Source: Hemiscyllium ocellatum (Eukaryota). From it: a DNA stretch of 64,000 nucleotides. Of this stretch, positions 1 through 3,070 are shown in pieces. Under the pieces are notes generated by a model that was not told the origin of the DNA, made no database searches, and saw nothing but the letters and a program-made list of their open reading frames with translations. The stretch covers positions 46,562,498-46,626,497 of the forward strand of contig NC_083435.1 in assembly GCF_020745735.1 (NCBI RefSeq). The letters are read 5' to 3'. Made by a program: the position numbers and the translations under genes. How positions within the stretch are numbered: the first letter of the stretch is position 1; each line of letters starts with the position of its first letter.

Positions 1-3000
1 TCCATTACTTACCTTGCATATCACTAAGTCACCACCACATATTCCTGTCTCACTCCATTAGTTACATTGTAAATCACTGAGGCCTTAGCACTGATCCCTG
101 TCTCAGTCCATTACTGAACTTATCTCTCACTGAGAACTCAGTACTGATCCATTTTGACTGTATTAGATACATTGTAAATAACTGAGACCCCAGCATTGAT
201 CCCTATCCCAAACTATGAGTTACATTGTAATTCATTGAGACCCCCACATTGATTCCTGTGGGAATCATTGTAACATTGTAAATTACTCTTTTAGTTACAT
301 TACAAGTTATTGAGACCTCAGTACTGATTAATGTTTCACTTCATTACTTAACTTGTAAGTCACTGAGACCCCAGCAATGATCCCTGTCTCACTCCATTAG
401 TTACATTGGGAATCACTGAGACCCCAAAACAGATCCCTGTGTCACTCCATTAATTACATTGTAAATCACTGAGACCCCAGCACTGATACCTCTCAGAATC
501 TACGCATTACACTTTAAATCAATGAGATGCCTGTACTGATTCCTGTCTCAGAGCATGAGTCATTGTGTCAATTACTGAGAGCCCAATGCTGATCCTAGTC
601 TCACTCCATGAATTACGTTTAAAGTCATTGAGACAGTCGCCCTGATCCTTGTGTCTCTCCATTGTTACATAATAAATCACTGAGACCCCAGCACTGATCC
701 CTCTCTCACTCCATTAGTTACTTTGTAAATCACTGAGACCCCAGCACTGATCCCTCTCTCACTCCATTAGTTACATAATAAATCACTGAGACCCCAGCAC
801 TGATCCCTCTCTCACTCCATTAGTTACTTTGTAAATCACTGACACCCCAGCACTGTTCCCCGGCTCAATCCATTAGTTACTTTGTAAATCACTGACACCC
901 CAGCACTGTTCCCCGGCTCAATCCATTAGTTACATTGGAAATCACTTGACACCCCAATGATCCTTCCCACACTGCATTAGTTACATTGCAACTCACTGAA
1001 ACCCCAACACTGATCTTAGTGTCACCCCGTTAGTTCCATGAAAAATCATTGAGAACCCAGCACTGACCAATGTTTCACTCAATGCTTTATATTATAAATC
1101 AGTGAGACCCCAGCACTGATCCCTCTCTCACTCCATTGGTTACGTTGTAAATCACTGAGACCCCAGCACTGTTCCCTCTCTCGCTCCAATAGTTACAATG
1201 TAATTCACTGAGTATCCAGCGCTGATTCCTCTCTCCCTCCATTGCTAACATTGTAAATCAGTGGCACCCCAGGATTGAGAGCAGTCTCTCTCTATTAGTC
1301 GCAGTGCAAATCACTGAGACCCCAATGATGATTACTGTCACAGTCCATTAGTTACACTGGAAACCATTGCGATGCCAAAACTGATCCCTGTCTCGCTGCA
1401 TTTGTTACATTTTAAACCACTGAGACTTCAACAGTATCCCTGTCTCACTTCATTACTTAACTTGTCTACCACTGGGACCCCTGCAGTGATGCCTTTCTCA
1501 CTATATTAGTTACACTGTGCATCACTGAGTCTCCCAGCACTGATCGTTGTTTCACTCCATGACTTAGCTTGCATATTACTGAGACTCCAGCATAGATTCC
1601 TGGTTCACTCCATTACTTATATTGTAATTCACTGAGATCCCAGCACTGATCCTGGTCTCACTCCAGTAGTTATACTGTGAACAATTAAGATGCCAGCACT
1701 GATCCCTGCCTCACTCCATTAGTTAAATTGTAAATCACTGAGACCCCAGCACTGATCCCTGCCTCACTCCCTTAGTTACAGTGTAAATCACTGAGACCCC
1801 AGCACTGATCCCTGTCTCACTCCATTAGTTACAGTGTAAATCACTGAGTCCCCAGCACTGATCCCTGTCTCAAACTATGAGTTATATTTTAAGACGTTGA
1901 GACTCCCACACTGATTCCTGTCTCACTCTTTTATTTACATTATGAATCACTGAGACCCCAGTATTGATCCCTATCTCACTCCATAACCATTGACATGCCA
2001 ACAGTGATCCCTATCTCATCCCATTAGTTACACTTAAATCCTTGAAACCCCCGCATGGATACATTTCTTACTCCATTAGTTACAGTGGGAATAAATGAGA
2101 CTCCAGCACTGATCCCTGTCTCAACGTATGAGTTACATTGTAAATCACTGAGCCCAGCAGTGACCCCTATCTCACTCCATTAATTACATTGTAAATCACT
2201 GAGACCCTAACACTAATCACTGTCTCACTCCTTTAGCAACATTATAATACCTGAGATTCCAGTTTTGTTCCCTGTCTCACTCCATTTGTTACATTGTAAG
2301 TTACTGAGAACCCAGCACTGATCCCTATCTCACTCCATTAGTTACATTGTAAATCACTGTGACCACAGCACTGTTCCCTGCCTCACTCTATTAGTTGCAT
2401 TGTAAATCACTGTGACCACAGCACTGTTCCCTGCCTCACTCTATTAGTTGCATTGTAAATCACTAAGCCGCCAACACTGGTCACTGTCTCACTTCATTGT
2501 TGACTGTGTAAATCAATGAAACCGGAGCACTGATACCTGACTCAGGACATGAGTTAATTTGTAAATCACTGAGACAGCAGCACTGATCAGGGTCTCACCC
2601 CATTAGTTACATTGTAAATCACTGATATTCCAGCTTTCCCTGTCTCTTTCCATTATTTACATCGTAAACCTCTGAGACCCTGGCACTGATTCCTGTCTTA
2701 CTCCATTAGGTACATTGTAAGTCATTGACACCCCAGCACTGATCCCTCTCTTGCAGTTACATTGTAAATGACTGAGAACCATGTCCCTTTCCTGTCTCAC
2801 TGCATTAGTTACATTGTGAATCACTTGATACACCTGCTCTGAACCCTCTCTCTACATTAGTTACACGATAAATCACTGGGATGCTAACAGTGTTCCCGGT
2901 GTCATACCTTTAATTCCATTGTAAACCACTGATCCGCCTGCACTGATCCATGTCTGACCTCATCAGTAATTTTGGACTTCACTGAGACCCCAGCACTGAT

Positions 3001-3070
3001 CCCTGCATCACTCCATTATTTACATTGCAAATCACTGAGACACCAGCACTGATCCCTGTCTCACTCCATT
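1..3070. repeat. 53-bp satellite array, unit A (consensus CACTGAGACCCCAGCACTGATCCCTGTCTCACTCCATTAGTTACATTGTAAAT)
   Basis: Clear 53-nt periodicity, with near-perfect monomers at ~680-900 and ~1690-1870 among degenerate ones. Confidence 0.95.

Follow-up and report, generated by a model that had tools for sequence, protein, structure and literature searches.

Sequence homology of a 53-bp satellite beside receptor genes of Hemiscyllium ocellatum to the reverse transcriptase motif B of CR1-type LINEs

The 64,000-nt window of the Hemiscyllium ocellatum genome that we analysed (contig NC_083435.1, positions 46,562,498 to 46,626,497) begins inside a tandem repeat of 53 bp, and the question it raises is what this repeat was made from and whether it arose where it now lies. 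The original prediction held that the repeat is an amplified reverse transcriptase (RT) motif of a CR1 element, that the right end of each array runs directly, or via one SINE, into a minus-strand CR1 relic, and that the satellite grew in situ out of a LINE coding region, with the flanking CR1 sequence in register with the motif.

Using TRF, we found the 53-bp repeat in four arrays within the window (period 53, 4.6-53 copies per array), with 65-83% matches between adjacent copies. In all four, the RT-motif sense is that of the minus strand. Array 1 occupies positions 1-3070 (TRF 1-242 and 291-3070) and comprises ~58 monomers, as delimited by TRF, the sequence itself and minus-frame motif hits; its left edge falls just outside the window start. 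Array 2 (21226-23735; TRF, sequence) contains ~47 monomers, and its left edge has been replaced with sequence specific to its unit. Array 3 (38982-39344; TRF, self-BLAST) is short, with ~7 monomers. Array 4 (56685-59145; TRF, self-BLAST, sequence) consists of two segments, 56685-58801 and 59027-59145, split by a minus-strand 3' fragment of CR1 at 58801-58967. Array length now spans 0.36 to ~3.1 kb, and monomers are on average ~80% identical to the consensus. Thus, the arrays have the head-to-tail arrangement and fixed monomer length of a satellite derived from a transposable element (TE).

The reverse complement of the TRF consensus, when set in the predicted phase, is the predicted monomer and translates as VTNGVRQGSVLGSQ followed by a stop and FT(I/M), which reproduces the translation that had been claimed (VTNGVRQGSVLGSQ, a stop and FTI). 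We also recovered the claimed ungapped match of 36 of 53 nt to an in-window CR1 at 24130-24182, and a hand count over the first 40 nt gave the 31 of 40 that had been reported for the core. The motif-B sites of two other CR1 copies (at 51182 and 10797) match the monomer at 29 of 53 nt. In a blind nucleotide scan, all 53 rotations of the monomer were compared without gaps to every position on either strand of the window, after masking of the arrays. The highest-scoring site was 24129-24182, with 36 matches, and the next best distinct sites had 31, compared with maxima of 29-32 over forty Markov-1 random windows of the same size.

At the protein level, we used a CR1 ORF2 profile of 1075 positions that was built from 115 sequences, namely the intact CR1 ORF of the window and 114 public CR1 proteins retrieved with it (mostly from birds, turtles and sharks). 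This profile served only for searching. When it was run with filters off against the six-frame translated arrays, we observed 38 hits, 37 of them on minus frames, and all of these 37 fall at motif B, around profile positions 609-626, with 19 scoring positive. The control, 20 permutations of every 53-nt block that kept period and composition, gave no hit above zero. Alignment to CR1 is therefore better than chance, both in the blind scan (36 of 53, against a null of 29-32) and in the profile search (37 of 38 hits), and since the blind scan, the profile hits and the permuted controls agree, the monomer is best described as an amplified CR1-type RT motif. Together, these sequence comparisons show that, within CR1, the homology of the monomer is confined to the codons of motif B in a CR1-type LINE, where "CR1-type" is relative to the references compared, which were CR1 only (the in-window copies and 120 CR1 proteins); the motif is also shared by other LINE clades (L2, Rex1, Jockey and I). 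The 120 proteins contain GVPQGSVLG 124 times and GVRQGSVLG a single time. Of the named CR1 proteins, the one closest to the CR1 ORF of the window is from Hemiscyllium ocellatum itself (93% identity over half of the query).

Motif B is present once in each in-window CR1 RT copy, as opposed to ~7 to 58 times in the arrays. The CR1 copy that holds the best match to the monomer (23831-25139, plus strand, profile 512-910) is a younger, 5'-truncated insertion that belongs to a family extremely abundant in sequencing runs of four organisms. Summed contig depth on the array bins was ~60x that of an exact single-copy contig, versus millions for this CR1 copy, a figure that is not a copy number; this suggests that the 53-bp repeat is a local, low-copy satellite.

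To what extent the four arrays are separate witnesses depends on the structure of the window. Self-BLAST resolves the window into four collinear tandem units of ~15-20 kb that are 78-88% identical, and every unit has a single array followed by the same right flank. Three of the units contain an intact ORF for a rhodopsin-type receptor (13702-14640, 34796-35695 and 52833-53771; Pfam 7tm_1, E ~1e-19). The edges of the arrays are homologous across units, with 2979-3792 matching 39260-40062 and 38508-39124 matching 56209-56825, the latter pair including the left edges of array 3 (38982) and array 4. These alignments show the four arrays to be paralogs of one ancestral array, which was already present when the unit was duplicated into at least four tandem copies. 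As the arrays and their flanks are paralogous, what had been described for the right ends of the arrays counts as a single observation rather than four.

The junction between array and flank carries further information on the order of events. A 5'-truncated SINE-like interspersed repeat lies on the plus strand at 3071-3332, with other copies in the window (e.g., 15742-15975), and its paralog in unit 3 is at 39345-39606. This repeat, which we take to be a shark tRNA-derived SINE, is inserted exactly at the array/flank junction in units 1 and 3, whereas units 2 and 4 are without it. A SINE common to units 1 and 3 only implies that a two-unit block was duplicated last. Within the arrays, the best diagonals in orthologous register reach 73-76% identity versus ~70% in other registers, a signal too weak for positional orthology within arrays to be of use, and we conclude that the arrays kept turning over after the units were duplicated. 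In Logan, contigs of three organisms extend across position 23741 (6 nt inside the flank of array 2) and continue for 40 nt or more before they end, which places the array/flank junction before the divergence of these organisms.

We found a genuine CR1 relic to the right of the arrays, although not directly at their edge. In unit 2, this relic, hereafter relic R, occupies 25176-26111 on the minus strand (profile 105-390; hmmsearch E 2.6e-17 and 3.3e-14; tblastn). It is best preserved in unit 4, at 59252-59986 on the minus strand (profile 169-401; hmmsearch E 1.3e-15 and 2.4e-16), where tblastn gave 45% identity over 53 aa (E 7e-9). The relic is weaker in unit 3, and unit 1 is without ~630 nt that the other units have kept. 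In unit 1, the right flank (3333-3792, minus strand) comprises the unassignable proximal stretch discussed below and a remnant of relic R; it is 84-86% identical in nucleotides to 25300-25575 and 59409-59692 by self-BLAST, and no significant CR1 profile hit of its own was found. Relic R represents the final part of the endonuclease domain together with the linker that precedes the RT, and lies on the same strand as the RT sense of the monomers. Its CR1 family reaches ~300-1300x single-copy depth at 25340-25513. The relic is 115-150 nt from the array, yet it ends ~207 residues short of motif B. Of the claimed direct run into CR1, therefore, the SINE in units 1 and 3 and a real minus-strand relic stand, the latter 115-150 nt further right than had been stated, and the stretch at 23736-23830 is not recognisable as CR1.

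Other CR1 remains surround the arrays. A separate relic of the CR1 3' part lies at 26292-26931 on the minus strand (profile 696-909 or 696-913), upstream of relic R on that strand, with paralogs at 3793-4499, 40770-41402 and 59920-60846. In a tblastx comparison, 3603-3725, 25393-25515 and 59502-59624 seemed to lie immediately ahead of motif B (E 0.002-0.04); we rejected this placement because the profile puts the stretch at ORF2 ~230-400, within one collinear relic (E 1e-16). At the left edges of the arrays, we found no CR1 from downstream of motif B. To the left of arrays 3 and 4, there are only unrelated CR1 relics on the minus strand, 0.8-1.3 kb away, which come from the ORF2 region that relic R represents. 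Within the window, CR1 coding relics could be detected over 12% of plus-strand and 9% of minus-strand sequence, ~21% with both taken together.

Taking these data jointly, we are fairly confident that the repeat is a decaying, non-coding satellite or minisatellite whose founder was 53 contiguous nt of motif B of a CR1-type ORF2, most likely born at this locus. A same-strand, collinear candidate parent does lie beside the array (relic R, profile 105-401, E down to 3e-17), and it is by its adjacency and orientation that birth in situ appears plausible; a parent element that is continuous and in register at the array flank was not found. Thus, the proposed growth in situ is plausible by way of relic R, and the register that had been proposed for the flank is unsupported. 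As relic R ends ~200 residues upstream of motif B, birth in situ would also need an internal deletion of ~0.5 kb. The arrays show no gradient of CR1-likeness from the flank edge, with edge monomers no closer to CR1 than central ones, and CR1-state variants at diverged monomer positions are at noise level (0-8%). The monomer walker used for this comparison passed over some monomers, so that its counts are lower bounds.

The alternative that best survives is that a LINE RT motif did give rise to the satellite, but at another site, from which it arrived by array seeding, ectopic exchange or insertion, so that relic R would lie next to it by chance in a genome rich in CR1. We consider this a serious contender, though the less probable account of the birthplace. 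It would accommodate a flank that is out of register with the monomer and the lack of downstream RT on the left, and such relics are common, with CR1 coding relics on ~21% of the window, both strands together, and similar minus-strand relics 0.8-1.3 kb to the left of arrays 3 and 4. Set against this is our own post hoc estimate that, given the 9% relic coverage of the minus strand, a relic in the same orientation and in collinear order no more than 150 nt from the array would be a ~2-3% coincidence, and there is no sign of array mobility.

A stricter version of birth in situ, the one originally proposed, has the stretch at 23736-23830 as the CR1 sequence directly upstream of motif B, in register with it, and we judge this version improbable. 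The proximal flank between array and relic R occupies 23736-23830 in unit 2, where it resumes at 25140-25175 past the CR1 insertion, and 59146-59251 in unit 4 (both read on the minus strand). The minus strand at 23718 reads LKRIHTAEEVELQLSKCKKLINGVRQGSVLG, and the string on which the proposal was based, LKRIHTAEEVELQLSKCKKLIN running into GVRQGSVLG, is indeed present. In register, 26 of 66 nt are identical to CR1 at 24064-24129 (P ~0.015, with one CR1 copy only), and, when compared with the CR1 at 24 kb, the protein score in this pre-set register ranked 3 of 415, although against the other two copies it was not significant (19 of 704 and 246 of 706). The profile also aligns QLSKCKKLINGVRQGSVLG to positions 606-624, at only 2.1 bits that come nearly all from the monomer itself.

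The less directed comparisons speak against this placement. In a blind Smith-Waterman alignment of flank peptides with the in-window CR1 ORF, scores were at the null median and placements fell elsewhere, and a sub-profile restricted to the 46 positions that precede motif B gave P 0.11-0.22 in the proposed frame for all four paralogs. Pfam, at E up to 10, found nothing in an 83-residue piece of flank plus two monomers or in its paralogs, and no match for stop-free translations of the monomers, under conditions where a true CR1 piece of similar length (62 residues, 24010-24195) was recognised as RVT_1 at E 1.5e-4. Moreover, the same 60 nt of flank fit a degenerate monomer, the KIDK/SPGPDG region and a C-terminal CR1 region about equally. 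A flank consisting of a degenerate monomer was rejected, the match being 17 of 53 after removal of 9 monomer-derived bases. If the flank is instead read as a continuation of relic R to KIDK/SPGPDG, the ungapped register from ENPK gives 25-27 of 60 nt; two of four gapped alignments agree on this placement, the sub-profile is not significant and a third placement scores equally. We conclude that the proximal flank of 115-150 nt cannot be assigned to a part of CR1. Given the profile P values, the null-median alignments and the empty Pfam search, the claim that this flank is the sequence upstream of the QGSVLG motif is not borne out.

Finally, the possibility that the motif resemblance is chance or convergence, with a satellite that has no LINE ancestry or that stems from the SINE head at the array edge, is effectively refuted. 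In its favour, the monomers are short, 17 of the 53 consensus positions depart from CR1 and the SINE head presumably has a short AGCACTG...CTCAC string in common with the monomers. However, the CR1 motif tops the blind scan far above a null within which the SINE copies of the window and all other sequences remain (at most 31 of 53, excluding a SINE-head origin). In addition, of the 38 profile hits, 37 are concentrated in a single 18-residue motif of the 1075-position profile, on a single strand, where the controls gave nothing.

The preferred reading, birth of the satellite in a local CR1 copy, can be set out as a series of proposed steps. A CR1 copy would have inserted on the minus strand, and in this dead element a 53-nt piece over motif B would have duplicated in tandem, the short duplication then expanding via replication slippage and unequal exchange. 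With this amplification or before it, ~0.5 kb of the element (profile ~401 to ~609) and everything downstream of motif B would have been lost. The parent would thus be the CR1 copy on the same strand of which an upstream portion (profile 105-401) persists 115-150 nt to the right. The array then travelled with the duplication of the receptor-gene unit, and its length would have drifted independently in each paralog.

We expect the 53-bp repeat to have no function. It cannot encode anything, because 53 is not divisible by 3 and there is a stop in the motif frame of every consensus monomer. The arrays place hundreds of copies of the motif beside each receptor gene, and we also considered that they might be transcribed and feed piRNA or siRNA directed against the most conserved stretch of active CR1, in which case they might serve as a dispersed trap locus retained alongside the receptor genes. 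We regard this as very unlikely. The single RNA-like run compared, from another organism, showed zero depth over the array bin.

Retrotransposon-derived satellites are common (PMC7004042), and a review of such repeats lists several that derive from LINE ORF2, namely the chicken HinfI repeat, which includes CR1, PROsat and Pvc20 (PMC9659126). The chicken HinfI repeat (Li and Leung 2006, cited in PMC9659126) is, like the shark repeat, a vertebrate tandem unit with CR1 that includes part of ORF2; as described there, its unit combines the CR1 3' UTR with partial ORF2, whereas the 53-nt shark monomer lies wholly inside motif B. PROsat of Phodopus roborovskii and Pvc20 of the harbour seal likewise have monomers from LINE ORF2 coding sequence (PMC9659126). 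According to the same review, these two are L1-derived and mammalian rather than CR1-type and from a shark. The PisTR-A repeat from Ogre offers a further parallel, as a short tandem repeat that was born in a TE and expanded to arrays (PMC9659126). In the account given by this review, most TE-derived satellites begin in non-coding or already repetitive parts (LTR, UTR, TIR; PMC9659126); unlike most of these cases, the shark satellite begins in the most conserved coding motif. In the literature on shark and elasmobranch satellites, we found no report of this or another CR1-derived satellite.

The route from LINE ORF2 to satellite is thus already known, and the shark 53-bp repeat adds one example to it and opens no new question. 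It is a tidy example, because the whole monomer sits in the most conserved RT motif. For genome annotation, CR1-derived tandem repeat, rather than CR1 insertion, is the appropriate label for such an array. For cartilaginous fish, the finding provides a statistically well-supported case of a LINE RT motif turned satellite, in an array that was carried along and altered in length as a receptor gene cluster underwent segmental duplication.

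Between positions 3070 and 64000, the window is organized as four macro-units in tandem, each about 15-20 kb long, with mutual identities of 78-88% and approximate bounds at 3071-23735, 23736-39344, 39345-58801 and 58802 to the end. Three of the four macro-units carry an intact open reading frame for a rhodopsin-type receptor of 299-312 amino acids (13702-14640, 34796-35695 and 52833-53771; Pfam 7tm_1, E about 1e-19).

Unit 3 also contains an open CR1 ORF2 of 772 amino acids (49772-52090, plus strand), which spans positions 165-885 and beyond of the 1075-position CR1 ORF2 profile. 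Its unit 1 paralog (9616-11682, plus strand) is 88% identical at the nucleotide level, with a reading frame disrupted by frameshifts. These two ORF2 sequences are copies made by segmental duplication, not separate insertions.

Relic R, the minus-strand CR1 ORF2 remnant in the right flank of the 53-bp satellite arrays, is affected by a deletion in unit 1: about 630 nt of flank and relic, retained in the other three units (25576-26208, 40063-40688 and 59693-60310), are absent at 3786. At a likeness of at least 80%, the segment 25340-25513 of relic R reached 300-1300 times single-copy contig depth, with adjacent relic bins low; this segment alone is common to relic R and a moderately abundant CR1 subfamily.

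Each of the four coded organisms, the sources of the matched Logan contigs, shows an enormous abundance of the CR1 subfamily of 23831-25139 (plus strand); the summed contig depth runs into the millions, a figure that does not equate to copy number. The reading frame of this copy shifts near 24200, 24370 and 24870, where there is either a stop or a switch from one profile match to the next. In the organisms' runs, many family members have additional bases at 24205-24207, 24368-24375 and 24868. A CR1 3'-end fragment (58801-58967, minus strand), 87% identical to 24966-25129, interrupts array 4, which restarts at 59027. Array 2 has lost its first ~200 bp, together with the left flank of the ancestral unit, to unit-2-specific sequence (17361-21226) that includes a further minus-strand CR1 relic (20477-20766, profile 288-383). 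The CR1-rich flank of unit 2 holds a 35-G run of 94% purity (27220-27254).

When the four units were compared, one SINE was common to units 1 and 3 only; this sequence pattern implies that the most recent duplication was that of a two-unit block.
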